Shown here piece after piece: positions 1-63,692 of a stretch of DNA of 64,000 bases. The stretch is from Zygnema circumcarinatum SAG 698-1b (lineage: Eukaryota; Plantae; Zygnematophyceae), in contig CM074805.1 of NCBI GenBank assembly GCA_037447605.1, positions 2,575,361-2,639,360 on the forward strand. Direction: 5' to 3'. The notes beneath the pieces are model-generated. The model had not been told where the DNA came from, made no database searches, and saw only the letters and a list, made by a program, of their open reading frames with translations. The position numbers were made by a program, and so were the translations under genes. Within the stretch, counting starts at the first letter, position 1. The number at the start of each line of letters is the position of its first letter.

Positions 1-3000
1 ACTCGTTTGGGTCCTTTGAGTGGTGGAACAAGACCCATTTTGATAATGTCGGCATAAATATGATCCCTCCTGACAATCCGAGAGCATTCTCAACACCTGC
101 AATGAGGCCCCATTCATTGTTGAGTGAAACACCAACGGAAGGCTTCAAAAAATGGGTGCTGATGAAAGAAATGTTATCAGCTTTCATTTAGGCATTTAGT
201 CAACGCACACTATTGTGTGTGCATGCAAGCGATCTGCATTAAGAAGGTCGCTTTCCATTCTTCGGTTGCAGAGCATCGGTTGGTCAAGGCTTTGTACAAT
301 AATTCTGGCCAAGTCTGAAGAAGTCATCCAATATGAAACGGGATACTTCCTGATTCGTAGAATTAGATCATCAGGAACGTCTTTCACTTGTAATCTGAAC
401 GACCAAGTTAAGGTGAGACTCAGAAAAGGCAAAGGAAGGGTTGGTGAGGCATACTTGTTCCATAGCAGGCCGCCTGTGTGCAGTTGGCTGTATACAACAG
501 AGTGCGCAATTCCACATTCTTTCAGCTCCATCTGCACTAAAGTTGCCATATAGTCTCACGTCCACGAGTGTTCTTGGATCAGCGTTTTCATTCTGTTTTT
601 GCCAAGCCTGCATGTTAATAGTCACCACCGGAAAATAAGTCAGAATGTGCTAGATGCTGGAATCTTGCATCGGTGACTCGAAAAAACAGTTAATTGACAT
701 GGCTCGATTCTAAATCAAATTGTCTAATTTTAATGTTCGTTCTGTTGATACGTCTTGTTACTAGTACTTGTTGGCCAGTCATAAATTTTCCTGACTACTC
801 TTGTTCGACAGCTTCTACAGCTGATACGTTTTACGATTTGAGGCCACCATGTACTCACCCACTCAACCACATTAACAAGCGTTCCGTCGTTGCGGTTCTG
901 CTCAATTGGCTTCCGAGCCGTCAGGAGTTCCAAGAGGACCACTCCAAAGCTGCAGGATGATGCAAAGGTGGCAGAAGATGAGACATTCGAAGGCGCCAAG
1001 CATCACTTTAGTAATAAGAGATGAAGCTCCTCGGCTGTTGGGTATGTAAGCAGCGACAAGCCTTTTCAAGTCACATCAGTGAGAAGTAACAGAGACCCCA
1101 GGCAGTGTCCTCTATTGAGGACCTAGTAAGGCAGTCCAATTTGTCAGTCCAATTTGAGGTTGGGGGCAACAAGTAGAATGACTCACAGTGAAAGAACCAT
1201 ACGGCGAGTTAAGTGGAATTACCTATATACGTCGCTTTTCTCTGTTAGCTGGCCCGAAAAGGCGTAGTCTGGAGCCAGGTAACCAAACGTTCCCATCACT
1301 CTCGTCGATACATGGTCCACTTCGTCTTTCACCAGCCTCGCAAGACCGAAGTCTGCTACCTGCGATGGAGGTTTGTTACAAGACCTTAAGCCCTTCGTTT
1401 ATTAAAAACAACACTTTAAGTACACTACCTTGCCGTACCTGGTAAGTGACTGAATGTTTTTGAAACAACATCACTTCCGTAGTTCCTTCCTTACTATCTC
1501 CTTTCATCGTTTTCGTGGATGAGTCAGTCGAACACACTTCTTGTTGCTATAGGTCATAATGAAATAGCCAGCATCATTTCGTCGTCAACACTCAAGCGTC
1601 CACATCAGAAAATTACCTTTGCATTAAAATCTTCATCTAGCAAGATATTCATGGCCTTGATATCGCGATGAAGGATTTTTGGAGAGCAGTCATTGTGGAG
1701 ATAAGCCTGAAGCGCAAGTTCAAGAACACGGGCGATTAGAGGGTTTGGTGATGAGTTATAGCCACGTCTAAGAAAAGGCAAGGAGAACTATGTATAATCC
1801 TATAGAAAGCTTATGCTAACTTACAAGATAAATCAAGCTACTACGACGGTTCATCAAAAGAGTCTAAGTCATCCATGTCAGCTTTAATTGACTTTATTAA
1901 AATATGTGATACATGAGAAAAGGTGCATCAATGGCTGGTATTAGCAAGATTGAAATCATTTGGCTACCTAATCGCTTTCGCATTCTCACCAGACCGCGTG
2001 CAGCTCCAACTGCAATCTTTACGCGGGTGGGCCACGTCAGCAAGGGATTGCCCATTCCTGAAAAACAGAGAAACCATAGGTTAACAAATTTGTTTGAAAG
2101 TTCACTTGTGGTACATTTTGTTTCCTGTTAGACATCTGAACAAGAGAGATGTGGCATTGATCTCGCGATGGCGATGCCATCAAATATTTTTGGACATAAT
2201 CATCGTGGGGAACCACGAAGAACTAGTCGCAAAGGACCTAAGGACAAAAGAAAAAAGCAACAAGATCTCACCTACAATCTCAAAAACGCAGGCGAATTTC
2301 TCTTTTTTCTAGATGTATTGCTAGATGGGTCCAAGCCATCATTGAAGCCAAGCACATATGGCCAAGCAAATGCAGTACTCGCGGAAAAGGTTAAGCGACA
2401 CATGGATGGGGGAGGTAGGCATGCTTAAAGACCATACCGTGGAGGCGGTCATGGAGAGACCCGTTGGGCATGAACTCGTACGCGAGCATCCCTTGATCAT
2501 GATTGTCCATGCCATAACCCACGAGTCGAACGAGATTTCTATGCTGTACTCGACTGATAATCTCCATCTGTACGAATCGAACCATCAGCTAAGTTACAGG
2601 AGGAAAAAAAACTACCAAAAGAAAAGCAACACCTTGCGACAATACCCGGCAACAATGATAAGTCTTACTTGGTAGATGTTTGACTTGCCACACAGTAAGA
2701 AGCAACAAAGCTACATAAGTTGTGTAAAGCGGTGCATGTCTGTAACGACAGCTGATATTTGAACTCAGCCTTGAGTACCCCTCACCTCGGATTTGAACGA
2801 CCGAGTCCTCTCTGTACTCCTCTGAGGCCCAAGATCCGAGTGCAGCTTTTTCACAGCCACAAGAGAGCCATCCGGCAACTGCCCCCTGTAGACGCAGCCG
2901 AATCCTCCTTCCCCGAGTTTGTTTTTTGGCGCAAATCCCTCAGTAGCTACATAAAGTTCCTCCAATTTAAACTCTCGCAAGGGATAAGCGACAGTTTCTC

Positions 3001-5190
3001 TTTTGTGTGCTATTCTGTTCAGCATTATAGGAAGAACTACAAGTGCTGCGTCTGCTTCCGCGCTTGCCGTCGTGCCTGTATCAGCAAATTTAGGAAGTGG
3101 TACCGGGAGTGATCGACACTTCTGTCTGATAGTTTGAAAGTATTCTGCTCTTATCGGGGCTGGGTGGAATCCACGATCATCTCTGGGATCCGTCCAGGGA
3201 GGTCCAATCGTCGGCCGGGGTGGAAGCTGCATGTCTAAAATTGGGAAGCTGCCTAAATCAAATACCTGACTCTCTTGTCTGGTGCCCCTCAAACTATTGG
3301 TCGGCTCGGAAAAGTGAGGAAGTCCTCCAACGTCCACAACTTTACTCGGTGAGAGCGACTGATCCGACAAAGTACCTGAACTCGAAATTGGAGTCCCTGT
3401 GCTTTGGCTGGAAAATAGGTTTCTCTTCCATTGGGGAAGAAGGCTGTAGCCTCCTTGCGAAGGAAAGAGAATGTCGGTCATCCCAGGCCCGCATGCCCGT
3501 GCAGGTGGACTTGCAAGTTTTGGGAATTCGGCTCCGACATTGAGAGGATGTGTTTCTGCTGTACTTAGGAAACAGACAAAGCAGAACAGTAGAACAAGTT
3601 CCTTCCCTTAAGATGAATTGAAGATTTAAGAATTTTACCCTCCCGAATGTCAACTTCCCCTGGACACAAACGTTTTTTTTCCCGCCATGAGCTTTATTCC
3701 AAAATTTAATTGCTCCAGAAAGGGCGGAATCAACAAGCACCTGGCAGCGATGAAGATATCTGTACATCCTTCATAAAATGGCGTCCTTGCATCAATAGAA
3801 TGTTTGACATAAAGAAAACTGCTCCGGCCGTGAAAGAAAAAACAGATGAAGCGATCCAAAGTGCAATGGGAGTGTTATAGAGACCCCAGCTCTGGGCTGC
3901 CTTTTCTGCACCAATTATGGCAGTTGCTGCAGCGACAGCAATGAACATCCTGCAGCAATAAGGTGCGAGATTTCTCAGTACTGTATGTAGATCAGGAATC
4001 CGTCAAACCCCCACGATCGACACCACTTCAAACGCTAGCAATAGCGGCCGAATAGGTATTAATCAGATTCATCACTTTAGCGCCATCTTGCTAAAAACGT
4101 GCACCAGTATGTGACAAGAGCTTGACTACACGGTTTCTTCTACGGCGACCATGGAAAACCTTGGCTGTACTTAAATCATAAAGCCAAAGACTCACCAGCC
4201 AAGAGCAGAAAAAAGGAAGCTGATCCATTTATACTTTAGAGTGAGCCTCTTTCGGAAGGAGCGCTTGCACCTGAAGCAACTTATAGCGTACACAATAGCC
4301 TGCAAAGAGGAGAAGGCAGCAGACTTTTTTTTCAACCAAGACAGACAGACAGAAAGCTGGCCTTGTCCATTTCGAAACCCGGTCAACTTGCGTAGTGCTT
4401 GCTTAACTTTAACAGAGTTGCAAACATGCCTGCACAAATGCAGCCGCGCATATCAGGGCCAAAGATATCCAGCTCTTCCTTGGACTATCCTCGTCGAATG
4501 GGAAGGAATCACTCAAATAGTGATGGTTGTAATCTGGGTCATAGCCTGCGTCTTCAAAGCTGCCAAACGCTTGACATCTCTCTTGGGGCCAGCCGGCTGT
4601 GTTCGTGCACCACACTTGGAGACATGTCTGCTCACTGCACAACACGCAGCGAATGACGAAGACATGACAGGCGATTCATGTCAGCAAAGCTTAAAAGTGC
4701 ATGGAAAGTAATATCCTTGAAGCGCAATCGGGACTCAAAGCCACCTTAAGAAGAGGGTTTAAGGTGGTTTTCCTTCTGGAAATCGAAATACCAGCATCTG
4801 CATAGGCGTAACTGAAACCAATGACTAGTCTCTCGTGAATGTCAATAAGATATCCACGCATATACCACGATATATATCATATATCATATTATATATATAT
4901 GGTATATATCGATATACCACGCAGTTAAGCAGCCAAGCACACAAATGTCAAGGTCAGTTTTGGCCATGCAAGATTCACAAGCCGTACCTTGGAAATCCCT
5001 GATTATTGAATAGTCGACAAGTCGTTACTTGCCTCCTAAACTCTCCTCGATTTGGAACCCTGGCAGCGTTGATTGCCAAGATGACAGCTGAGCAGACTAA
5101 ACATCCATGAACCAAAAAGCCGGCGAGAACATAGCCATTCGTCAATATCTGCAGCTTTTTGACAAGTATTTGTTTGATTGGTGATGCCAT
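1..5190 (-). CDS. RLK/Pelle-type Ser/Thr kinase with an N-terminal four-TM (DUF1218/VCC-like) domain; 3' end lies outside the window
   Basis: Phase-consistent exons: 5190-5029, 4627-4430, 4299-4196, 3949-3741, 3558-2786, 2567-2438, 2057-1990, 1706-1617, 1359-1223, 949-859, 607-455, 96-1 (2211 nt, 737 codons, no stop). Kinase motifs [67 protein letters not shown]. Four hydrophobic segments in exons 1-4. Confidence 0.88.
2154..2258 (-). mobile_element. Fragment of the Mutator-like element family (in kinase intron 6)
   Basis: Aligns to 63062-63156 inside the MULE: 29/32 identity in the first block and about 38/44 in the ggggaaccacga...gcaaaggacctaag block, same orientation. Confidence 0.75.
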
Positions 5191-5989
5191 TCGCCTCGTT
5201 CAGGCGAAGAAGCATTAAACGCTGTCAAACCCCACACAGGTAATTCTTGTCAAGGAGCGTAGTTTGTCAACTCTCCGAACACTTAGGGGATGTAACGTCC
5301 AGTTTAAAAGTATTCCGTATACAGTAAAGCAATATTCCTATGCTCTGCTTGAGTAAATCACAACGGAAAAACCCGAATATGCCTTTGTTCTCCATTCGTC
5401 ACTTTCTTACGAGTCCTTGCCGTAATATTTTCAAAACTTCATGTTATTCAGGAGCCGTCCAACGTAGTGCTGGCTTCCTATGGTTAGAGATTGTTGTCCT
5501 GGACTAATCACGTGATTACTTCCATTATACCATACCTCTTTTCAACTTCGGCTTCAGTGACGCTCGTACACAGAGTTCACTTTATGAAGAGCCTTCTGAC
5601 AACTATTCTGCTTCGACGACTTAAAACGAACATACCTGAAGAGTGTACTGTGAAATTTCAAGCTTCAAAACGCGTATTATTTCCTTCCCTTCTCCTCCTC
5701 GTCCATTCTTATTCCCAGCCCAACATTCCTGCAAGTATGCTGATCCTGATCGCCGACTCTAGCCACTGAACAGCTGTCAGATCCTGTCTAACAATACTTC
5801 GTCAGCTGTGAGCTCCCTAAATATCAGAATATCCTAACATGTGCTCTCCAAATATCCATTGCAGAGAAATTTAGCACGAACCCCCTTGCAAAATAAACTC
5901 CGTACGCCTTCATGCAAGCCCCTGCAAGTGATACTGCGAGTCCTCGAACAAAACCCTGATTTTTTCCAACCGTTCAGGAAAATCCAAAA

Positions 5990-7025
5990 ACCTAACCCAA
6001 TCTTCAGCCATGGACCCCCTCTGTTAGAAGAGGAGCCTCCTCGCCTCCTGCAGCCGGGCCTCTCCCTCTCCCTCTCCCTCCTCTCCCTCCCGTCGCCCTC
6101 CCCCTCTCCCGCCGTGTGAGCATGTCACGCCATTCAAATTTCCCCCCTCTATACCGCCAACCGGCTTCAAACTGGCGCGCTATAGCTCTGCCGTTCCTTG
6201 TAACGGCGCTCCCCGACTGGCCGCCGTCCCGCGTGACGCCCAATGGGAGGCCGTCATCGCACCACGTCGGCGGCGTTACACATGGAACGGCCCGTTCCGC
6301 GGCACTCTCCCTCCCGTTCCCACGGTGTCGATTTTCCCGCCCGGCCCTGAGCGCGGCCGCGCCCCCCCGCACGTGTCAGCGGGGGGGCTGCCGCCCCGTC
6401 AACCAACGGCCCACTTGGATTTACACCACGTGGCTATATGTTATAGGGCCACGTGGCTCGCTGTGTGTATAGCGGTGGCACCGATTGGCGTCGCGAAGGG
6501 AAGAAAACCTTCGTTGGGGCCGTCGATCGTACGGAACCAATGGGGGCCGAGAACTGCGGCCCCGCAGGTGCGGAGCAAGGGCGGGCGGCGGTTGAGTCGG
6601 TCACTTGTACGGACGGATTCCGGCAGGCGCAGCCGGCGAGCTGCACGATGCCGACAGGCGGCCCCGTCGGCTTCGGCGACTGACGCCGCCAATTGGCTGC
6701 CGTGGTCCTACGTGGCATGATGACATGGCGCTCTGTGCGGGCGGTTCCTTGTCCTGTTTGACTGAACTGGCGCAGTGCAACTGTGTGTAGGTGCATGGAA
6801 AGCCGTTAGGGTTTGGGCCGGCCTGGCGGGCGGCAGGCCGGGAGGCGCGGGCCACCACAAGCGCGCGATCGCAGCCTTGTGCGGCCGCGAGCGCTCTGCG
6901 ACTACGCACTCGCCATGGCTGCGTGGCGCCTCGACTTGCTGGTGCTGGGGGGGAGGACGAGTCGGCCCGGCAGGACGGTCTTCACGCCGTGAGATGCGAC
7001 CGTGGTCGAAGTTCTGAGCGCGGGC
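5990..7025. promoter_or_regulatory. GC-rich divergent promoter region between the kinase (-) and ABC1K1 (+)
   Basis: Head-to-head genes. CT/GA tract at 6060-6110. CACGTG at 6370, 6427 and 6450 (CCACGTGGCT twice). GTACGG at 6529 and 6607. Confidence 0.6.
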
Positions 7026-13725: not shown

Positions 13726-15752
13726 TCACTGAGGGATGTCAATGGTGAAAGTAAACACGTGGTCTTTCCACAGCCCTCCTTCCAAATACCGTTCATGAAA
13801 CTCCACTTGCCCATTCTTATTAACTGCAATGGCAATACAGCTCCGGGTACCGTACCGCCCCTGCAGACGCGAAGCAACTAGGCATCTGAAATAAGTAGGC
13901 CGCCTTCAGAGAGATAGTAACATAAGCTTCGACAACATAACCTGCCATTTGATGGCATCGCCATCGTGAGTTCAATGCCTCTTCCGTTCTTCCGACAACA
14001 GGGACAATGATGGACTCTAGGGGATATGCAAGGACATGCACGAGACGAAATCTGCATACAGTAAGTCACGCACAATGAGGACTCTAGATTCGTCTGTTAC
14101 TCATACATTTTAACAAAATGAAAGGACATGCCGTGGAGCAGCGAAAGTGGTCAACGAAAGCTCACATGAGGCGTTTCACACTCCACAAACGCCGGACTAA
14201 GCTCCCGCTCCCATTCAATGCTGCAACCCGTCGAAGGCAACAAGTGGTCTTCACACTTCTCCCGGTCGTATAAAACATTTTCAATCACCTCCACCAGCGG
14301 CACTGCTCGAGTGCCGTGCGTATCCAGCAAAGCTTTTAAGCGCTTCTTGGCAAGTTCTACCTGCAGTAAAGCGGACTTATACATCACAATGCTGTGGAAG
14401 CCTGTCTGAGACAGCCTTCGTCGCTGCAAACGTGCATGAACTTCAATCGACAAGGAGAAAATTCTCAATATTACAACCAGTCTGAACAGAGCTTGTGTGC
14501 ATGCAGTGCAAGTCACAGCTTTTCTCCAGAGCAATTACCTTTGGCCATGGAGTATCAAGCAGTGCATTACTTAGTCCATGGATACCACATGTCAATCTCT
14601 GAGGCTGGACTTGAGAACACGTTGGCCTGTTTGGCAGGTATGCCATTTCCATTGTCACGAGGTCACCAACAACAAGGTTGAAACCGTTATAATGATTGAC
14701 TTCTCCAGCCAGTTGCTGCAAGTACTCTGTTGGAGATTTGTCCGACTGCTGTGACGAAGGACAAGGACAAAAAGGGGTGCGGAAGCGAGGGGAAGAGGAA
14801 TGATGAGAGAATTAGTAAAGTAGTTCCTCCCCTGATGTCACCCGCATGCTGCCATGAAGTGAGTGGAAGGCCAAGTCCATCATAAGAAAAGCTTATTTGC
14901 CGCATCAACAATCGAAACTAGTGAAACTGGTGTTCGCAAAGCTATTGCGCATAACGCCTTAAGGGCGGCATTACTTCCAATGCCTTGAGGAGCTCATATC
15001 TGGAAGTTGCAATTTCAACAGCAAAGTAATAAGTGGTTGCTGTTATCTAAACCGTGACCTTCAGCTACGGAGCGCATGTTTACAAATCGATCCAGCACAG
15101 GATGAGGGGAGAATCTTGCAGTCTGTGTGTTTCTTGCCATATCGAACATGCATCAGGGATTTGAAAAAGAGCATGACCTGAAGAAAATGAGTAGTAAGCT
15201 CGCCGCGTGTGAGAGCGTGGGGGTCTGATGCAGGCTCACGGTAGTTTGTCAGCAGAGCCAGGCGGCCATTCTTGTGTATGCCAAGCCATGTGCCACCCTT
15301 CTCACCATCCCTTCCGCCCAGGATGGAGGCATCATCACACCAATAATGGCTTGCAGTCGTGGGTCTGTTGCATTGAGCCCAACAAGGTGTCCAAAAACCA
15401 GTGTCAGTCTGGAGGCCCGCCATACTTGCGCATAGGATAATGTTGCCTATCATACCAACTTAATCAGCAACTGAATTTCTCAGAGCACAAACAACGACGG
15501 TGGCGACTGTGCAGGAGCTAGATGACACAAATCTTTGTTCGAAAAAACGAAACAAACGGCAAACGTGAATCGAAATCAGGAAATTTAGCCGTATTCTGTT
15601 TTTGTCACATAAAACTTCTAAATAAAATGATGTACGAAATAATCTCCTTCCGTATGGCAAGCGCTCTACCTGGAGTGAAGCTCATCTCGGTTGGAGGCCA
15701 ACAGCAGCCGATAGAGAGGATGGTCATCAAATAACCACACGCACATGCACAT
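13726..15752 (-). CDS. TANGO2: TANGO2 / NRDE-family protein, 5 coding exons, 268 aa
   Basis: Exons 15752-15670, 15364-15178, 14745-14539, 14360-14166, 13860-13726, all in phase. Motifs MC..HPLY.LLLASNRDE, GGRDGEKGGTWLG, GRLALLTN, YNGFNL, GLSNALLDTPWPK, YGTRS. Confidence 0.93.
13946..13978 (+). mobile_element. Short fragment of the same MULE family (TANGO2 intron 4)
   Basis: Reverse complement gcattgaactcacgatggcgatgccatcaaatg matches 63062-63094 at 30/33 and 2154-2186 at 30/33. Confidence 0.6.
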
Positions 15753-28600: not shown

Positions 28601-31600
28601 GGGTGAATGGGCGAAGCAGTCTGAAGCCCAATCCTATTTTGCAGCTTCCAAGCATAAGCTGAGCGCCTTTTTCGCACTTATTTTTCGTTACTCCTCTGTT
28701 CATCACCCCTTACTAGCTTCAACTCTCGCACGAATCTGCGAAGACCCAGAAAATCGGACAGCTATTGGAAAGGACGAAGGAGCCATTCGACAGATAGTGA
28801 GCATGGTCTTAAGTGACAGCCAGCACGTGGTAAAGGGGCCCTTCGTTTTCATCTCCTCAAAACCATTTTCATAATGTGGATCCTTCATCGTTTCATTGAT
28901 GTGCCCCTTCTTCTGAAAGCCAAACTCGAACAATGAGGAAAGTTTCTCTATTAGGTACAATAGAGCCATGTTCTCTTTCCCTTTTTGGGGTCGTGCGCAT
29001 CTAATAGAAGCATGAGGAGCTTGCAGGTGGAGCAGGCATGCCTGGCATTGTCGGCCCTTGCATCCGATGCAGCAGTGGTGCTGCGCCTTATGAAGGCCGA
29101 TGTCCTACAGGCCATCTGCCAGCTGCTGCGCTCCAAGGAGACGGAAATTCTTGTTTCCGTTCTCAGGGTGGTCTCCAACATTGCTTTCTCTTCCGATGAA
29201 GTGTCAGCGCGTCTCCTGAATCGCGACACGGTCATGCTGTTGCAACAACTCTGCACTCACCAACACGTGCTGGTGAGAATTGTAAACGTTATTGAATTGT
29301 CTGGGTCCCTTGTTGAACCTTGCCCTGGGCTCGCTAGGTTGACGAGGGACTGAGTATGAACCACGGGTCTGGTGCAGTACTGAAGCTCAGAAATACGGAA
29401 TTTTGTCTTCCTCCCAGGTCCAAAAGGAGGCTCTGATCGCGCTTGGCAGCCTTGCCTTCTGCTGGGAGAACCGCCGCGTGCTACTTGCGACTGAGGGCCT
29501 GAGGGACCTCCTCCTCCACCTCAGCGCTGCTCCCGAGGGAGGTGTTCCCGCAGCCGTCCCCGTTCGCCGCGCTGCCGTGCGCTGTCTGGCCATTCTCGGT
29601 GAGCTCTCTTTTGTAGCGCAGGCAAGTGCAGGTCTCCTCACGAAGCCATGTAGCGCAGGCAAGGTTGTAGGATTGCGGTTCTCCGCCTGGAGAGGGAATG
29701 TGCAATGGGTACTATAGCATAGAAGACAAGCCGGTAGAGTTGATGAGAAGTGAAGGCGTTCTCTACGTGTTGTCCCTCTCGCGAGCCTCATTTGCCTTCG
29801 TCAGTGAGGTATGGTCGTCACGGTGTGGTGGTCAGGTTTTCACGTCGGGGCCTCCCTATTTGTGTCAATGTCTTGTTTGACATAGACGTGTGCCTTGAAG
29901 AATTTAACTTGTCTTTGACGCTCTTTAGTTTGTTTTTGTCCTGTCGTGGTTGTGGCACGCCACCCGTTATGAGTGACCGAATTGTATTGAGCACGCTTTG
30001 CTATCGTGAATGTGAACTGCCTTAGTGGAGAGAAACAAAAGAGATGTTGTCTACTGCTGACCTGTCACGAAGTTGAGTGGTTCTAATGGGGTTGAGCCGC
30101 TCGGAGCCTTCTCAGTATCATTAGCACTGAAACACACTGAGAATGGATGAATCAGGGGAGAACGAGTATTTGAGGCGCGCAGTTCGAGGACACCATATTG
30201 GCAAACGTGGTGTACGCGTTCTCTCCATGGATGGGGGCGGCATGCGAGGCATGGCAACAGTTCAAATGCTCGCTGAGCTGGAAAGGTCCACCGGAAAGCG
30301 CATCCATGAATTGTTCGATCTCATCTGCGGGACGTCGACTGGCGGCATGCTGGCAGTTGCATTGGGAATCAAGAAGATGAGTCTAGAACAATGCGACGAC
30401 ATATACAAATCATTAGGTGGGTGCTCTTTAGGTGGGCTCTGTTTGTGGTGGCATTCCGTTACAGTGACATCCTTGAGCTTGGGCATCGCGCAGAGGGGGT
30501 CATCTCTAGGTGTTGCTGCTGCTTACTGCCGTTGGGTTCGTTTGGGGGCAGGCAAACTTGTCTTTGCCAATGTGGAGCAAAATGAGAGTGCAACGTGGCG
30601 GGAGAAATTGGACCAGATTTACAAAAGCTCCTCACAGAATTTGAGAGTGATGGTGCACGGGTCAAAGGTGTGTATTGTGCTTCCTCTTCAATCCCCTTTT
30701 TTGTTGCGACTGTGGTTAAAGACTTCCATAGCATCAATATTTTTTTTTATTTGTTACAATTGTAAAACATCTAACACTGCCTGCGAGGTTCCCATGAATC
30801 GGACAGCAAGCAAACTCAGTGGTAGCTTATCCTGCTTGACTCAGTACATTTAGAGGCTCGCTAAGGTATGGGCTCTGTACATGTTTGGCTTGTGTGCCTC
30901 AGTCCGCTGGAAACAGCTCGTGTAGAATCAAATGTGCAGTTCTGAGCCCACAGATGCCTGTTCTCTAGTGCAGCACAGCGCTGAGGAGTTTGAGAGACTG
31001 CTGAAGGAGATGATTGGGGATGAAGACGGAGACCTTCTGATCGACTCCGCTGTGAAGGGCGGTCCGAAAGTCTTCGTCGTGTCAACACTTGTCAGCGTGC
31101 TGCCTGCCGCTCCTTTTGTATTCCGTAACTATCAGGTGGGCTTCCCTTCTCCCTCCAACATGATCCCACATGGCCTACCCCTCCCATCTGACTTCTCAGA
31201 CGCTCCTGTATTGGACACTTGTTCTGCCATGTTTGTGTTGACACGTGGCGGCTGCTCATTTGGCTGCAGTATCCTCCGGGTACACCTGAGGTGCCCCTAT
31301 GGACCTCGGAGGGCCCTACCCAGACCGCCGGAACTCCGGCCCCTGCCTCCACTCTAAGCTCGCAAGTGGGCCCTCGGAAGGCGGCCTTTGTGGGCAGCTG
31401 CAAGTTCCGTACATGGGAGGCCATTCGCGCATCCTCTGCAGCGCCGTACTACCTGGATGATTATTCCAACGGTGAGTGCTGCTCTGGGCTTAGTGGGACC
31501 ATGGGGGAAGAATTGGGGTGGGTTGTCTGCTGTGAGGTGGCAGGGTAGGATGTGGGGTGAGTTTTAGTTCACGGCACTTGTTCAAGGGAAGTCCTGAAAT

Positions 31601-38016: not shown

Positions 38017-41000
38017 ATGGCGCACTGCCGGCCACCGATCGCTCTCCTCCTCCTCCTGCTGAGCATTGCGATCCTTCCACGCGGCGGGCTGGCGGCGAGC
38101 CTGACCCTGGACACGAGCGACCCCTCGCAGGCGGTGCTGCGCAACGACGAGGTCGCGGTGACCCTCCTCCGCCCCGCGGGGCGCATCGCGGGGCTGAGCT
38201 ACGCGGGGAGGGCGAACCTCCTCGCGGAGCTGCCCGCGGACTACGACGCGCCGTCGCGGCCGGAGGGCTACTCCGCGACCAACGCGTTCACGTTCGGGGC
38301 GGCGGGGGGGGCGCCGACCAACCGCGGGTACTGGGACGGGGTCTGGCGCGACGCGGACGGGTCCTCCAGCTACGACGGGATTGAGTGCGAGAGCTTCGAG
38401 GTGAGGGAGGGGGGGAGGGAGGGAGGGAGGGAGGGACAGGGGGAGGGAGGGAGGGGAGGGAAAGGAAGGAGAGGGAGGGAGGGGGGGGAAAGAGAAAATG
38501 TAGGGGCGGGGAATGCGGGAGATGGTTGAAAAAGAAGAGGGAAAGGGCGGGAGTGTACTGTGAAGGAAAAGGCTTCAGAGAGCTCGGTCCCTGGGAAGGA
38601 AAAACGTTCTTTTGAGGATATGTAGCCACAGAAGGGTCTGTGTGATCGGCTTTCGTGTGCATCAGATGGGAGGGGTTGAGGATTAATTGTCACGATGGTT
38701 GAAGGAATCAAGATTGATCGCTTTGATCAATACCGTATCCTGCACGAATCAAGAGACTGCGTCTGGTCGATACTTTGGATCCACCGCGTCGAGCAAATGT
38801 CATAGAGTCAATGTGGATCACCAGCAATGCTTGTACCAGAAGTACCGCAGTACTTATTGCTCGCGCATGTTGTCCAGTTTCATCGATTCAATCCTGGAAG
38901 CTGATGAAGAACGTGCAATGCCGTGCAGGTAGTGAAGGAAGACTCCAACCTCGTAATTGTCAAATTTTCGCACGTGTATTCCCCCGAAACCGATGACCCC
39001 GGCAGCTTTCCTCTTGATATCGACCTGTACTACGCGCTGGGGAAGGACGACACGGGCTTCTACTCATGGGCGGTGCTCGGCCACCAATCGACCTATCCGG
39101 CCATGTCACTTGTGGAGCTTCGCTTCACCATGAAGCTCGATGCGGTGCGGCTAATTACACGCATGCAGCAGCAAACTAGATAATGAGGTAGCGCAGCTTT
39201 CGATTGATGACTTCATGCATAAAGAGTACTCGCCTCTGAGGTTTTTGTTGCCACTACTTTTGCTTGGCAGGCGTTCCGCTGGACTTCTCTCGGAAAGGAT
39301 AGGCAGCGGGTGATGCCGGAGTGGAGCGACAGATATCAAGACAACAGTGACCCAACTTTTATCACTGAAACTCGCCTCCTGAAGAACCCCACAAATCCGG
39401 AATTTACAGTGAGCCCCTTCATTTTTAACTCAGCTCCGTGGACGCTTTTGTTGCTTTTCTTGCCAAAGTTCATACCCCCCGACTTCTCCGACAATGGAAG
39501 CGACTGTAAAGAATACGCAAAGAATCGAAGGAGGTTGACGCGAGAAAGGAGCGCGGCGGCTGACTGGCTCTGTGCTGCATCCCTTGCAGAATGAATACGA
39601 CACAAAGTACAACTACCTGCTAGACATCGGCGACCAGCTCGTGTACGGATGGGCGTCCAACGACAGTGAACCGATCGGCCTGTGGTGCATGAACCCCTAC
39701 AAGTACGAGTACACGCCCGGGGGACCCACCAAGCAGGAGCTCACAGTGCAGGTGGGCTACGCAACTCATTCCCTTGCTACTACTCTATCAATGGTTTTTT
39801 TTTGTTTTCTTTCCAAGCGTAAAAGGAAACATGGCACCGACATTCTTGTCATTGTCCTGTTGATCTTTTTTTATGCAGACGGGGCCATATCTGCTGAATT
39901 ACATGCATTCGCAGCACATCGGAACTCCAAGTGTAGACATTGATGCCAACGAGACCTGGTCGAAGACCTACGGCCCTTTCAGGATTCACTTGAATCAGAA
40001 CACAGATACGAGCTCCACCCGCCAATGGAAGGAGCTCTTCGAAGATGCGCGTGCTTTCTCTACACAAGAATACTGGCAGTGGCCCTACGAGAAATTCGCA
40101 GACTCCACGTACTACCCGAGCCAAGGTGAGCAGAATGCTCCCTCCACTCCTATTCTGCTTCTGCTTCTGCTCTCTGCCATTCTCTATTCTCTTCTTTTTT
40201 AGTGCATCACCCCTGACTCCAACACCTGTGATCTTGCTGCAGAGGAGCGCGGCATTTTGAAGGGGCGTCTTGTGCTGTCCGAGTCCTCGGGGGTCGACCC
40301 CGACAACATCGACTTCAAGCGCGACGGCTGGGTGGGATTGGCTCCGGTCGGCCACGGGGGGTCCTGGTCGTACGAAGTGAAGGGCTACCAGTACTGGTCG
40401 CACTTCGCCAACACGCGGTCCCCCAACTTCCAAGTCTCCGATGTTCGGCCCGGGGACTACACTCTGTACATCTACATCATGGGGATTTATGGGGACTATG
40501 CGTCAACTAGTGCAATCACTATTCGAGCCGGTGAAACACTCGACATAGGAGAGGTGCATTGGAGCCCGCCAAGGGCAGGCCCGACTCTTTTTGAGTTGGG
40601 CTATCCAGACCGTAACTCGGAGGAGTTTTACATTCCGGACATCAATCCCCTGTCGGAGTATCCGTACAGCCAAACCAATCCAAACAAATTTCGAGATTAC
40701 GGTGTTTGGAACGCATATGTGAAGGCATTCCCTGATTCTGATCTCTTTTATGATGTCAGCTCTTCAGATTGGAACCTTGATTGGTGGTACCTTCAAACTG
40801 CTCGGTACAAGGATGATCTCTCGTCGGCTAAGCCGACAGTTTACACCATACACTTTGAGCTTGAAGAAACCCCTTCACCCACGTCTGTCTTCACTCTGAG
40901 AGTTGCTTTGGCCGGAAAGAACGAAGCAGTGCTTCAAGTGTTTGTGAACACCAAAGATTATGAGAGCACTCCTGCCCTCGACACGAGCACATATCCTGTC

Positions 41001-41198
41001 CCCTACTCGAGCGATGACAACGGCATGGCGCGTTCTGCAGCACATGGGGCGTACTACAAATACGATGTGTCGATTCCGGGATCTGCATTGGTTAAGGGAA
41101 TAAATCACTTGTACTTCCGACAACGGCGTACCAGCGACAAATTTATTTATGTTGCCTATGATTATATTAGATTAGAGGGGCCAGCTTCGACTAGTTAG
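38017..41198 (+). CDS. Secreted rhamnogalacturonan endolyase (polysaccharide lyase family 4), 6 exons, 700 aa
   Basis: Exons 38017-38400, 38929-39144, 39271-39408, 39590-39751, 39879-40125, 40243-41198, all in phase. Signal peptide (PIALLLLLLSIAIL). Motifs NRGYWD, YDTKY, HSQHIG, WSKTYGPF, WPY, GSWSYEVKGYQYW, PPRAGPTLFELGYPDR, YDYIRLEGP. Confidence 0.93.
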
Positions 41199-50463: not shown

Positions 50464-53400
50464 ATGGCGGCCTCGCGCCCGCTTGTGACAGTGCAGCAGC
50501 TCGATGGCGAGGGCAAGGAGGCGACCTCCGCCGCCCTCCCCGCCGTCTTCGTGGCTCCCATCCGCCCCGACATCGTGCACTTTGTGCACTCCAACATGGC
50601 GAAGAACAAGAGGCAGGCCTACGCCGTCTCTGTGAAGGCTGGCCATCAGACTTCTGCCGAGTCTTGGGGAACAGGGCGCGCTGTTTCTCGTATTCCGCGT
50701 GTGCCGGGTGGAGGTACGCACAGGGCTGGGCAGGGAGCCTTCGGGAACATGTGCAGGGGAGGAAGAATGTTCGCTCCCACCAAGGTGTGGAGGAAGTGGC
50801 ACAGGAAGATTAACATCAACCAGAAGCGGTACGCGGTTGCCTCGGCCCTGGCAGCTAGCGCAGTTCCGAGTCTAGTTCTGGCACGCGGCCACAGAATTGA
50901 GAAGGTGCCGGAGGTGCCATTGGTGCTGAGCAACGAGGTGGAGGGAATTGAGAAGACTTCGTCGGCGGTGAAGATTTTGAAGAAGATTGGTGTGTATGCC
51001 GATGTGGAGAAGGCCAAAGCTAGCCGAAACATCAGGGCAGGAAAGGGAAAAATGCGCAACAGGAGATATATTTCGAGGCGTGGACCCCTTGTGGTGTATG
51101 GCACCGAGGGTGCCAAGCTTGTGAAATCCTTCCGCAACATTCCTGGTGTGGAGGTATGCATCTGCTAAGGCCATGTCTTTCCCATCAATATTTGGCTCAA
51201 TCAGAGACGATGTTACGTGGACATCCCTATCAATAAGACAGTAAACATGTTTTAGGGTTAAGATTTTTTTCAAATTTCGCTAGTGGTGAGAGTTGAAGTG
51301 ATGGGATGATGACATATGTCAAAGCAGTAGTTGTCTCATGAAGCTAGATAGTAGGTTTGGCGTCAATAGAGATTGCCCTCGGGTGCTTTCTTTTTATAGA
51401 CCTTCCATGAAGCACCATGAAGTATGACCTTCCTTTGATATTGAAGGTCACGTTTTCTTAATAGATGGTATGAGGTTGAAGGTGACAACCTCATTCTTTG
51501 CGAAATAATGGTAGTTGGGGTTGATGATTCCTCTAGTGGAGTGCAGGAGCTTACCCTGCTTCTCTGATCAGTCACAGATGCCTTAATAATGTGCACAATG
51601 TTAATGATGCGAAGGCTCACTGTACGCACATGACCATTTTTTTTTTTCCAAAGTATTAATCTCTGGCAATGACGATGTCTATTGTGTTTGCAGATTTGCT
51701 CGGTGGATCGCCTCAACTTATTGCAGCTGGCACCTGGAGGCCATTTGGGGCGATTAGTTGTTTGGACCCAAAGTGCATTCGAGAAGCTAGACTCCATCTT
51801 TGGCACTCAGGATAAGCCTTCGGAGTCAAAGAAGGGCTATACTCTGCCACGATCAGTGATGGCTAATTCTGACTTGGCCCGCATCATCAACTCAGACGAG
51901 ATTCAGGCAAGCTCGGATACCATCAATTCGCTTTCAAAAAACAATTAGACACTTCAGTAGCACATGTGTCTGTGTGGTTTTGTCAAGCTAAATCTGACTA
52001 TGAATTGGATATTCGCACCTGTTACAGACTGTTGTACGCCCCACGAAAGAGAGCTCAAAGCGCCGTGTGCTGAAGAAGAATCCATTGAAGAACTTGGGCG
52101 CCATGCTGAAGTTGAATCCGTATGCAAAGACTGCACGACGCATGGACCTTTTGGCCCAAGAACGGCAGATGAAGGCCAGGGCAGAGAAGCTGGACGCAAA
52201 GCGCAAGGTATGCAGACCTCATCTCTTTCCTGTGGGTTTGCCTTTTGTCCAAGTGCGCAAAGGCGCCTGAGAAGCTATAAGCCTTTTGCCATTTACATTT
52301 GCATTTTCTTTCCTGCAAATGGCTTGAACTTTGAAACTTTTGAACTTTGGCTTCCGGGGTTTCCGGGATTGGAACCTGGGTGGTCAGGGGGAGGGAGGGG
52401 AGGGTAGACTGAAAGTGTGCATTATTGAGGCTTATGGTCATGGTTTATTCACAAATAGAATTTTCACACCATTATACCGTCATCGTGTCCACTAGCAACC
52501 GTTTCTACTCTTACAACTTAGAAGCCTGGCATGAACACTGTGAAGTGAACAGGTTCACAGTTGAGAAAATCAATAGATGTAGAAGTAGTGTTATACAGCA
52601 GTGAGGTCTTGAACTAGGGCAAGGGAACAAAATGGACCATCCTGCATTCAGAGGGCTAGTATATGCCGTTGTTGAGAACTTCAGTGTTTTGGTGGGTACA
52701 GTTAGCTATTGATACTGTTTGGAGTTACTGCAAGGTAGTTGAGTGTGGGGATTTTGCTCTATCTAGTTTCACAGAGCAAGCTGAGTAAACGAAGAATTGA
52801 TATGGTTTCACAGTAGGGGGTGGACAACTTGTGATGGTTATAATTGCCAGGGCAAGGGAAAGTAGGGGCGCTTAAAATTAGAACGTCAAGGAATTATTAA
52901 AAGTTATCTTAAGCTATTGTGTTCATGTATTCATGCAAACCCGTCTTTATACCGTCCCGAAGTAGCTTGGCACATATTGAGTTTCCAGGGTAATAGTTCG
53001 TGTATGAGTTAGAGATATGGTCATTAAGATCTTGCCATAGTCTTCAATTGAAAACGAATTTGAAGTTTGAGGGAAGCTGATGAAACATACAGACCATGTA
53101 GAATTCACCCTCATGACTCTTTTAGGGCAATTTTTTTCATGTCTGCTTTAGGATTGCGAGCATGGTTGGCTGCCGGTTCTGCTTTTATGTCATCAGTACT
53201 GCCTTGGGCCATGAATGGAAGCGTGAGAAAGAGCCTTGGTCAGTGGTTTTTTGTTTTTAGAGTTTACATTTACATATTATACTTAACACTCGGAGCTGCA
53301 CATTTCTAATTTAGGTCGACTTGGCTATGATTGCCAATGAGGCGCTTATGATACAGCAGGAAAGACAAAGTACTTCTGATGCTGAGTTATTGCTCTCACC

Positions 53401-55006: not shown

Positions 55007-57037
55007 TCAGTCACTGGATGGTTGGCAAAGAGCAGGGCAAAGAGTAGGATCATTTGTCGTCACAGCTTGCACACCCAGTGCCACCTGTTGCCTTAGAAGG
55101 AGAAGGGTGTCTGTAACCCATGAAATGATGGGCCGCTCTCCTGTCATCGCCTCAACTAGGGAGTCATGTGCTGCGGCCCAGCCAACCCCCTCGTGCCACA
55201 TGGCGGCCGTAGTGTTGTCACGGGGACCAAAGATGTATGCGAGACCTGCAAACCAGAAAGTGTTCTTTCTGTCAATCGTGGAATGGGCAGGTTGAAGCAC
55301 TGTGTCTCTGCCTGAAAGAAACAAATTGAAGCGTCCAAATAACAAATTGAGCACTTTCCAGGGAAGTTTTTAAGGCTTGCAGTCAATAAAGCTCAACTTA
55401 CTACTGGAATGAGTTATGCGTTCCAGGTTCCTCCTGTCAGTTTAAGGAACTCTATCTTTTCACAAACGCGAACTTGGTGAACTGGTAAAAGACTTACCAA
55501 ACACGTTCTCTGACAAAGGGCCTAATTTGTTCCGGTGAGTGGCGAAAGCCTCAGCCACCTCGTCTATCAAGCGATGGTTAAACGACGAGAAAATCAAGCC
55601 AAGCTGAGGTTGATAGTAAGGCATCGGTCTTTTGAATGCCACCAGCCAATCAACCAGAGTCTTGGCATATATGCGTTCCCAGTCTCCATCCGCCATGCAG
55701 TTTTGTGAAGCACGCTGTGAAGCCCCGTCTTCGCTGTTTTTGTGTCCAATCGCAGACAGCTGCCTCGACCGTGAGACTACAGCTTCATTAAACTCCTTAT
55801 TCTGGGAGTCTGCTACCTCTGTGTGCCCCTGGTACCTAGCTACAGATATTGAGGGGTTCACCTCTCTGCGCATCTGTATCAGTTTCTCAGGAAAAAGTTG
55901 AATGTTTGCTTGCCCAAGCGCAGCCCCTTTGGCTTCGTTCACTAATCTCCTGCGTGCTCCGGCACCTTCATCTTCACATTGCTCATGTTTCAGCTCCACC
56001 ACCACTTGGACTGGCCGATCCCACAACATCTCAACTACCTCTTCCAAAGAAGGAATTCTCTCCCCAGCGAAATCAGAAGAGAACCATGATCCTGCGTCAA
56101 GTTGTCTCAGAATATCCCAGCCGAGATCTTCCACTCGCGAAGGAGTTGTGAGCATGCGCTCTCTGATTGTGCGACCATGACCGACTGCTAAGCGCCTGTC
56201 ACTCGTTACGTGCACATCCAACTCAATGCAGTTTGCTCCCACCTGCACATAGTCCTACGCAGACTGTGTCATACCCTCACTAAACCTTAGTCAGCTGACT
56301 GTGTCCAAAAGAGCGATCTGTGGCTCTGCCGGCAGAGGAGCAATGAAGACAAAGATAAAGACTGCGATTGTATGCATGCGCTCACATTCAGCAAACTTGA
56401 CACTGATTTCAATGCTGGAATCACACGGGTGCATACTTGGTGTTTGGTATGCCTTTCAGAAATATTAAGTGAAGTTGAATTCGTACACAGCAGATAAATT
56501 CCTTACATGATGATGTACCGGCCACTACACTACTGGAGAGTGAGGCATCACTATAGTTTACAGTACTGTACTCAAGCGCCAATTGAGACCCACTTTTTTG
56601 TATGCCGCGGCTGGGCAAGCAGCTTAACGAAAGTGACCTGACCACGTCAAAGCAAGCCATGCGGTTAAGCAATGGCCATGGCGCACCTCCAAAGCCTTCT
56701 TGAACGAGGCTAGCGTGTTCTCTGGCGACAGACGCCGCGCTCCTCTGTGTCCACAGCATGCAAGCCGTGGAGGCTGAGAAGGCTGCACGAAGGAGCACCT
56801 TCCACCTCCATTCGTGTTGCTATCTCTATCCTTCCAGGAAGAGGAGCGCGGCCGAGAATCTGAAGCTTTTGGGGTATCGGCTTGCAGCGAACTGCTGGTC
56901 AGCCAGAGCGCCGCAAATAGAGCCGAAAAGAGCAGCGCTGCAACAGGCAGCCATGGCTGTCTCTCGGAAGAGCTCCGAAGCCATGCGAGGCGCAACTGGA
57001 AGGGTGGGAGGAGGGAGAAAGGCCCACCACCAGCCAT
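55007..57037 (-). CDS. Membrane-anchored glycerophosphodiester phosphodiesterase (GDPD family), 3 exons, 466 aa
   Basis: Exons 57037-56687, 56242-55498, 55311-55007 in phase. Motifs GHRGARRLSPENTLASF, GANCIELDVHVTSD, LDAGSWF, IPSLEEV, VVELK, FSSFN, WVTD...GVQAVTTNDP. N-terminal hydrophobic anchor LPVAALLFSALFAALWL. Confidence 0.9.
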
Positions 57038-62875: not shown

Positions 62876-63692
62876 GAGAATGATACTGCACCCCCCCCAA
62901 TATGGATATCCCACCCCCTTTCTGAAAACTTTGCCCTCCCATTTTGGTGATCCCGCACCCTTGTTTTGGATGTTTCACCCCTATTTTGGATATCCTACCC
63001 CCTTGTTTTCTCGATTTCACTACTGACTTCCAACATTGTGCAACGAAAGAAAAGGGGATTTGCATTGATCTCACGATGGTGAGGCCATCAAATGACCATG
63101 ACATGGGGAACCACGAGAAACTGGTTGCAAAGGACCTAAGCACAAAATAAAAAAACTAAGTGCAAAAACCTTAAAAAGAAACTAAACGAAACAACCCAAA
63201 TTTCCTTCTTTTTGGAAAACGTCGCCTTGATCTTGAAAGGGCAATTTTTCAAGCTGCTGGAGGTATGCCTCTTCTTGCTACTCTCTTCCTGACCTCTATT
63301 CCCGTAGGTCCCCCCGCTGAAGCATTGCAGGTGGAGTCGCCGGCTGTCGCTATGCCTGCCGATCTTGATGTCAACTCCTTCGTGCCTGTAGTGCTCGGTG
63401 ATGACTTGTACGAGCTCATCGCGGGTCTCATACTCAGTTGGTAGCATTTTTGTGGACATTGCAAACCGAGAAGAGGAGAGAAGAGGAGGGGAGGGTAGGG
63501 GAGGGGAGGGGGGGAGGGGAGGGGAGGGTAGGGGATATCTCCTCTCGAAATATCCAAAACAGGGGGGGGGGATATCCAAAATAGGGGGTGGAATATCCAA
63601 AATAAGGGGCGGGATAACCACAATGGAGGGCAAATTTTTCAAAAAGGGGGGTGTGGTATCCAAAATGGGGGGGGGGGTGCAGTATCATTCTC
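62876..63692 (-). mobile_element. Non-autonomous Mutator-like element (MULE), 817 bp, long TIRs, 9-bp TSD
   Basis: Ends GAGAATGATACTGCACCCCC... and ...GGGGGTGCAGTATCATTCTC. TIR similarity extends about 135 bp. Identical flanking CGGTCTAAT at 62867-62875 and 63693-63701. Confidence 0.95.
63190..63459 (-). pseudogene. Truncated MULE transposase N-terminus (FAR1/WRKY-GCM1-type Zn DNA-binding domain)
   Basis: MSTKMLPTEYETRDELVQVITEHYRHEGVDIKIG...LQCFSGG...SSLKNCPFKIKATF...EIW fits the FAR1-type pattern. No DDE catalytic domain fits inside the element. Confidence 0.7.

Follow-up and report, generated by a model that had tools for sequence, protein, structure and literature searches.

In the plant lineage, signalling at the cell surface depends mainly on the RLK/Pelle family, whose members are treated as either single-pass or cytoplasmic kinases. 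At the beginning of the 64,000-nucleotide stretch of Zygnema circumcarinatum SAG 698-1b DNA analysed here (the window), exons encoding several hydrophobic segments lie next to exons encoding a kinase of this type. A first-pass annotation read them as one gene, in which a four-pass, DUF1218-like membrane domain is fused to the kinase. The locus therefore raises the questions of whether both parts belong to a single transcript, what the membrane part is, and what kind of protein would result.

Gene structure

The gene was read from the sequence as 12 exons on the minus strand, proceeding from 5190 to 1 and running off the window start (Table 1). When joined, they give a stop-free translation of at least 753 residues, with the C-terminus beyond the window, and the exon phases are mutually compatible throughout. 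Exon 12 is open at the window edge; the first 31 residues of the C-terminal tail are inside the window, and one RNA contig (X1 contig 1) extends 1782 nt past window position 1. Introns are GT-AG in all cases but intron 2, which is GC-AG. The start codon at 5190 is the first in-frame ATG past a stop at 5202-5200. The leader exon was placed from loose ends of X3 and X4 contigs at 5224, whose sequence is found on the minus strand immediately upstream of 5636. An out-of-frame upstream open reading frame of 59 codons, beginning at 5215, is also present in exon 1.

Searching the window with the gene model (tblastn) revealed no paralogue, Rfam gave no match above noise over positions 1-6000, and exact look-up of the exon-5 open reading frame returned no record. 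The window also contains a uL4 gene, 88% identical to that of Mesotaenium endlicherianum.

Table 1. Features of the gene, in window coordinates
Feature	Positions	Strand	Content
5' leader exon	5636..5800	-	upstream limit not fixed; two short uORFs within
Leader intron	5635..5222	-	GT..AG; joins leader exon to 5221
Exon 1	4988..5221	-	leader remainder, start codon, TM1, beginning of loop 1
Exon 2	4430..4634	-	bulk of loop 1 and first half of TM2; followed by GC-AG intron 4429..4300
Exon 3	4196..4299	-	end of TM2, juxtamembrane Cys pair, basic loop, start of TM3
Exon 4	3741..3949	-	remainder of TM3 (to 3904), loop 3, TM4 (3867-3796), 18 post-membrane residues
Intron 4	3559..3740	-	182 nt; seam between membrane module and linker/kinase
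Exon 5	2786..3558	-	linker, juxtamembrane segment, kinase N-lobe
Exons 6-12	2567-2438, 2057-1990, 1706-1617, 1359-1223, 949-859, 607-455, 96-1	-	remaining RD kinase

Transcript evidence

RNA contigs came from four runs (X1-X4) of two studies (2019 and 2024). Expression is seen in every run, at modest RNA depth, and with the four runs pooled all 11 predicted junctions are present in the contigs. Those between exons 1 and 2 (4634/4988) and between exons 3 and 4 (3948/4195) occur in 4/4 runs. The junction between exons 2 and 3 (4297/4428) is found in X1, X3 and X4; it has a 7-nt ambiguity, and its sole canonical placement is GC..AG, corresponding to the 4430>4299 junction that had been proposed for checking. 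The second junction so proposed, 3741>3558, joins exons 4 and 5 and was recovered in two of the four runs (3558/3741 in X1 and X3), with 83 nt on its shorter side in X1. Exons 3, 4 and 5 are joined in X3 contig 12, and X2 contig 6 (2150 nt) extends from exon 2 as far as exon 9 or beyond; single contigs thus connect the transmembrane exons with the kinase exons. Compatible frames, RNA junctions and bridging contigs agree with the original proposal that the first four exons are spliced in phase to the kinase exons. The four-helix membrane module and the RLK/Pelle RD kinase are encoded together, as a fusion, by a single transcribed gene.

Linker and kinase domain

The linker (residues 223-425) contains 12% Pro and 11% Ser and matches no family. 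It had been described as Ser/Pro-rich and about 190 residues long; its presence stands, with a length of about 200 residues and an only moderate Pro/Ser content. In exon 5, the kinase has GxGxxG at residue 456 and VAVK at 474 (K477). The alpha-C Glu is located at about 498, the HRD motif at 577 (D579) and DFG at 597-599 (D597). An activation segment of the [10 protein letters not shown] type occupies residues 617-626, with APD in place of APE, and RPAM is found at 716. The earlier call of a complete RD kinase is borne out by these motifs, including the APE-like segment, and the catalytic motifs expected of a eukaryotic protein kinase are intact.

Kinase exon pieces give Pkinase and PK_Tyr_Ser-Thr matches in Pfam. 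The nearest solved kinases are BAK1, LecRK, BRI1, BIK1, RIPK, PBL2, FERONIA, Pto, SOBIR1 and LysM-RLKs, with IRAK4 after them; for the activation-segment exon, the best solved matches are RIPK, BIK1 and PBL2. Library neighbours are land-plant RLKs of the LRR-RLK, CRK6 and PERK types, at 40-45% identity. Plant RLKs and RLCKs together with animal IRAKs thus rank ahead of other kinase groups, and, judged by its sequence, the kinase is an RD member of the RLK/Pelle (IRAK-type) family, as had been proposed. Identities of 40-45% extend to several land-plant subfamilies and, by this identity-based measure, none of those sampled includes the kinase.

The membrane module

Four hydrophobic helices are predicted ahead of the linker, at residues 19-41 (TM1, positions 5136-5068), 123-145, 162-186 and 199-222. 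They are the only segments of the whole protein in which 19-residue windows reach a Kyte-Doolittle mean of at least 1.6 (peaks of 2.38, 2.34, 2.15 and 1.85), and they include all four segments quoted in the first-pass annotation. The TM1-TM2 loop is acidic and contains four Cys residues; the Cys content had been foreseen, but the loop is 81 residues long rather than about 65. A juxtamembrane Cys pair is situated just after TM2. The TM2-TM3 loop, correctly anticipated to be basic, has 8 Lys/Arg in 16 residues and no Asp/Glu, and loop 3, between TM3 and TM4, has 12 residues. Because the number of helices is even and the TM2-TM3 loop has this positive charge, the kinase would be cytosolic, in line with its earlier placement, and the N-terminus would also be inside.

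Possible relationship to DUF1218 proteins

Pfam recognised no membrane module in the four N-terminal exon pieces (67, 68, 34 and 69 residues). PF06749, the DUF1218 family, was unmatched on each of these pieces, which were scanned separately, even at E<=10, whereas the same scan detected kinase pieces of 30-45 residues from this gene at 19-24 bits. This makes it unlikely that the module is a typical DUF1218 domain. The DUF1218/VCC label was not upheld and, as far as these sequence comparisons reach, any relationship would be a remote one.

Such a relationship would make the module a divergent DUF1218 domain and the gene a DUF1218-kinase fusion, a reading that we regard as doubtful. The TM2 and TM3 segments may resemble DUF1218 motifs, which serves as a lead and not as a test. 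DUF1218 proteins have a similar layout, being plasma-membrane proteins of 163-257 residues with four helices, the first of which is often called a signal peptide (PMC4773003); they are stand-alone proteins without a kinase. A 2026 preprint traces the family to charophyte algae (10.64898/2026.08.17.745377), so it could occur in this lineage. Apart from the missing PF06749 match, the reading is weakened by ESM-Atlas look-alikes of three N-terminal pieces that are noise (scores 0.48-0.69), and neither DUF1218 nor PF06749 appears in the text-format supplements to the publication on the Zygnema genome. Four helices and first-loop Cys residues in a small membrane protein are shared with other tetraspan families and do not discriminate.

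A bolder form of this idea, to which we give little credence, is that the module is distantly related to DUF1218 and the gene a natural 'Rosetta-stone' fusion, in which an RLK kinase is joined to a DUF1218-type tetraspan protein associated with walls and plasmodesmata. If so, stand-alone DUF1218 proteins of land plants would serve receptor kinases as co-receptors or scaffolds in the membrane, which would fit the MWL1-CRK19 interaction found by split-ubiquitin (PMC4773003), and the gene would establish a tetraspan class among the receptor kinases of the plant lineage, one that is discarded by survey pipelines built for single-TM proteins. Any DUF1218 kinship of the module would turn the fusion into a testable hypothesis for the biochemical role of DUF1218, namely receptor-kinase partnership.

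Signal peptide or first helix

TM1 might instead be a cleaved signal peptide. The mature protein would then cross the membrane three times and carry, at its N-terminus, a free ectodomain of about 80 residues with four Cys, the kinase still being cytosolic. The positive charge flanking TM1 is similar on both sides (3 Lys before; 4 Arg and 1 Glu within 15 residues after), small residues are present downstream of the hydrophobic stretch, and in Arabidopsis a signal peptide is predicted in the corresponding place for almost every DUF1218 protein (PMC4773003). However, the hydrophobic core of TM1, at 22-23 residues, is long for an h-region but has the usual length of a membrane span, and we consider cleavage unlikely.

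Origin of the fusion

When the exon-5 piece was compared with 1.84 billion representatives by phmmer, every one of the 2936 matches fell on the kinase N-lobe; none matched the linker, and there was no self match. A local phmmer search in which the spliced N-terminus was compared with the top 150 gave nothing. The word-indexed search, for which the open frames of exons 4 and 2 were the queries, yielded no candidates, those considered being at most 157 residues, below full-length or DUF1218 size. A scan of metagenome contigs found no relative of module or linker, and a PDB sequence search with the exon-2 and exon-4 pieces found nothing significant.

With no homologue of module or linker found in these collections, the fusion may have arisen recently and be specific to this lineage. 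That it is an exon-shuffling product without conserved function, a reading with which the modest RNA depth would also agree, seems distinctly improbable: the reading frame is intact across 12 exons, the catalytic residues are complete, and the gene is expressed in all runs of both studies. Moreover, the searches used short pieces and length-filtered candidates, and the absence of relatives is weakly supported. Were the module an orphan, its interest would be mainly evolutionary, as another example of kinase domain shuffling.

Products of the locus

The locus might also yield mainly two products, a four-helix protein and/or a soluble kinase, with the fused mRNA as minor read-through. X2 contig 6 still contains intron 4, an X4 contig enters it by 46 nt from the exon 5 side, and the exon 4/5 junction is missing from the X2 and X4 contigs. 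Retention closes the frame at 3733 after three extra codons, giving a 243-residue product with the four helices only, and an in-frame ATG is available downstream at 3481. Yet in X1 the depth of the exon 4/5 junction (7.2) is similar to that of the exon 1-4 contig (6.35), and X3 has the junction too. The X2 contig that keeps intron 4 keeps intron 2 as well, like unprocessed pre-mRNA; intron 4 is too short for a terminator and a promoter; and contigs can show presence, not absence. We judge this reading very unlikely. Two separate genes are ruled out by the exon 4/5 junction and the bridging contigs, and a pseudogene because the open reading frame is intact and expressed.

Proposed protein and mechanism

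The locus is probably a single functional gene whose product is a polytopic membrane kinase, made up of the module encoded by exons 1-4, the linker of about 200 residues and a catalytically complete RLK/Pelle RD kinase. In such a protein, the four-Cys loop of 81 residues and the 12-residue loop would be outside, and the N-terminus, the basic TM2-TM3 loop and the kinase inside. The membrane module may serve as an anchor and as a sensing or partner-binding unit, in place of the usual signal peptide, ectodomain and lone helix. If the helix bundles or the Cys loops associated laterally, kinase domains could meet and the activation loop be trans-phosphorylated, as for other RD RLK/Pelle kinases. 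The Cys pair following TM2 is a plausible palmitoylation site, which would favour membrane nanodomains. We have identified no family for the module; its large first loop and short second loop recall DUF1218 and claudin-type tetraspan proteins. Pfam recognised no ligand-binding domain, and we use 'receptor' as a presumptive label.

Comparison with known systems

A literature search covering multi-pass RLK/Pelle kinases, DUF1218-kinase proteins and zygnematophyte domain combinations found no publication describing this architecture, in keeping with the first-pass annotation. The multi-pass design is unusual for the RLK/Pelle family. Its presence in an alga closely related to land plants would mean that RLK/Pelle kinases have also been coupled to polytopic membrane modules. 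A recent RLK survey defines its subjects by a signal peptide, exactly one transmembrane helix, an ectodomain and a kinase (PMC12757656); this protein, with four predicted helices and no recognisable ectodomain family, falls outside that definition, and a one-helix filter of this kind would discard genes of this design.

Single-pass RLK/Pelle proteins (BAK1/SERK3, BRI1, FERONIA, CERK1) share the kinase family, the RD motifs and a cytosolic, C-terminal kinase. They have an ectodomain and a single helix, whereas here there would be four helices with exposed loops of only 81 and 12 residues, and their short juxtamembrane segment is replaced by the long linker. DUF1218 proteins (VCC/DEAL, MWL1/2, TVA; PF06749) likewise have four helices, small loops, first-loop Cys residues and a plasma-membrane character, with a streptophyte distribution including charophytes (10.64898/2026.08.17.745377), but they stand alone without a kinase, and PF06749 is unmatched on the exon pieces here. 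The RLCKs BIK1, RIPK and PBL2, the best matches of the activation-segment exon, are also without a ligand-binding ectodomain; they are soluble or lipid-anchored, unlike the integral four-helix protein predicted here.

Claudin/PMP22-type and tetraspanin proteins have four helices with both termini inside. Claudin/PMP22-type proteins share the arrangement, with a large Cys-bearing extracellular first loop and juxtamembrane Cys after TM2, and are likened here by layout; neither family is known to carry a kinase. Polytopic sensor kinases include bacterial histidine kinases and the GPCR-PIPK fusions of Dictyostelium and oomycetes. Their kinase classes and membrane domains are unrelated to those of the Zygnema protein, and the analogy is limited to the fusion of a multi-pass sensor to a cytosolic kinase.

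A single gene joins membrane module and kinase

On the minus strand, from position 5190 to 1, twelve exons can be joined via splice signals with all phases compatible (see table). Their translation is stop-free for at least 753 amino acids and still open where the window ends, the C-terminus lying beyond it. The ATG at 5190, the first in-frame one downstream of a stop, is the start codon. Ten introns are GT-AG; intron 2 (4429..4300) is GC-AG.

Exons of the kinase gene and of neighbouring genes (window coordinates)
Feature	Position	Strand	Basis or remark
Exons 1-6	5190-4988, 4634-4430, 4299-4196, 3949-3741, 3558-2786, 2567-2438	minus	splice signals
Exons 7-12	2057-1990, 1706-1617, 1359-1223, 949-859, 607-455, 96-1	minus	splice signals; exon 12 meets window edge
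Patatin-like phospholipase exon	30143-30853	plus	
Polysaccharide lyase family 4 (PL4) exon	40257-41198	plus	rhamnogalacturonan lyase type
Ribosomal protein uL4 exon	50464-51168	plus	
GDPD exon	55460-56248	minus	

Contigs from four (X1-X4) of the eight sequencing runs available for the region, all of one organism, were compared with positions 1-5600; they are spliced and therefore RNA-derived. All 11 coding junctions are present, and eight of them recur in three or more of the runs. X1, with 83 nt on the shorter side, and X3 contain the exon 4/5 junction (3558/3741), where the membrane module passes into the linker and kinase. The intron 2 junction appears as 4297/4428 with a 7-nt ambiguity, being canonical in the GC..AG placement only; the mRNA is identical under every placement. 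Both junctions named by the first-pass annotation, 3741>3558 and 4430>4299, are thus seen. Exons 3, 4 and 5 are joined in X3 contig 12 and the leader and exons 1-4 in X1 contig 3; X2 contig 6, 2150 nt long, spans exon 2 to at least exon 9 and retains introns 2 and 4. Given the 3558/3741 junction and the bridging contigs, the transmembrane and kinase exons belong to one gene and one mRNA rather than to separate mRNAs. This is a genuine gene with an unusual architecture.

Removal of intron 4 (3559-3740) looks less efficient than that of the other introns: besides its retention in X2, an X4 contig enters it for 46 nt from the exon 5 side. Retention is predicted to stop translation after 243 amino acids, which would give a stand-alone four-helix protein.

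An additional 5' leader exon, with its end at 5636, was recognised from a loose contig end at 5224. Three upstream ATGs lie in the leader (minus strand, within 5215-5036 and about 5710-5680); at one of them begins a 59-codon out-of-frame reading frame that overlaps the main start codon. The context of this ATG is weak and the main one carries G at both -3 and +4; translational control through leaky scanning is possible.

Other features of the locus

X1 contig 1 (2727 nt) extends 1782 nt past the window start, which may reflect a long C-terminal extension, a long 3' UTR or reach into a neighbouring gene. On the plus strand, one X2 contig has a GT..AG joint at 410-810, skipping about 399 nt, which suggests a spliced antisense transcript over the exon 10-11 region. 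Intron 6 contains a short dispersed repeat (2058-2244), where RNA contig depth is 900-2200 versus about 10-50 for exons and many contigs continue into unrelated sequence; two more partial copies lie at 63062-63154 and 13947-13979 (79% and 94% identity). Positions 4860-4925 of intron 1 are AT-rich and microsatellite-like; a mir-1277 match there (Rfam score 23.9 bits, gathering threshold 81) was treated as noise.

The surrounding genes are ordinary in kind, and no paralogue of the kinase gene occurs within the 64-kb window. The uL4 exon is 88% identical to Mesotaenium endlicherianum, its closest named match, and 76-84% to Spirogloea, mosses and liverworts, which puts the host among streptophytes near Zygnematophyceae.

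Membrane topology and kinase

A Kyte-Doolittle scan bears out the four transmembrane segments proposed earlier: exactly four membrane-length hydrophobic segments (residues 19-41, 123-145, 162-186 and 199-222), with none in the remaining protein. The first loop (81 residues) is acidic and contains four cysteines, and TM2 has a cysteine pair at its cytosolic end. The TM2-TM3 loop has eight Lys/Arg and no acidic residues among its 16, so it is assigned to the cytosol; four helices should then place the N- and C-termini there as well, together with the kinase, whose position the first-pass annotation had likewise inferred. Because the charge flanking TM1 is ambiguous, this segment might instead be a cleaved signal peptide, leaving a three-helix mature form with the kinase side unchanged. 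In the proposed mechanism, the membrane-embedded module would control the RD kinase through lateral association.

The linker (residues 223-425; 12% Pro, 11% Ser) matched nothing searched. In the kinase domain (about residues 433-722), all catalytic motifs are present, with APD replacing APE, and exon pieces (single-exon translations) match Pkinase/PK_Tyr_Ser-Thr in Pfam. The closest solved structures are BAK1, LecRK, BRI1, BIK1 and SYMRK for the N-lobe and, for the activation segment, RIPK, BIK1, PBL2, BAK1, FERONIA, Pto and SOBIR1, then IRAK4. Against 1.84 billion representatives, the exon 5 piece, carrying linker and N-lobe, matched on the N-lobe only. The best full-domain neighbours, from angiosperms, are an LRR-RLK, tandem-kinase proteins, a CRK6 isoform and PERKs (40-45% identity). 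On these sequence grounds the proposed RLK/Pelle RD assignment is sound; no subfamily can be assigned.

Comparison with DUF1218 proteins and receptor kinases

The proposed DUF1218 identity of the module did not find support. None of its four exon pieces (at most 69 residues) matches PF06749 at E<=10, whereas kinase pieces of 30-45 residues from the same gene score 19-24 bits in the same scan; a typical DUF1218 domain, cut alike, should therefore have shown. DUF1218 membership is unproven and, in the typical sense, appears rather unlikely; a remote relationship is possible. Weak searches for relatives of the N-terminal pieces (queries of at most 69 residues, word-indexed candidates of at most 157; the single exhaustive search used exon 5) found none.

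As the first-pass annotation had supposed, the architecture appears undescribed: our literature search found no DUF1218-kinase fusion and no multi-pass RLK/Pelle kinase. A recent RLK survey demands a single helix (PMC12757656), a criterion that would discard genes of this architecture. DUF1218 proteins, whose origin a 2026 preprint traces to charophytes (10.64898/2026.08.17.745377), are stand-alone four-helix membrane proteins of 163-257 residues (PMC4773003), whereas here four helices are fused to a kinase.
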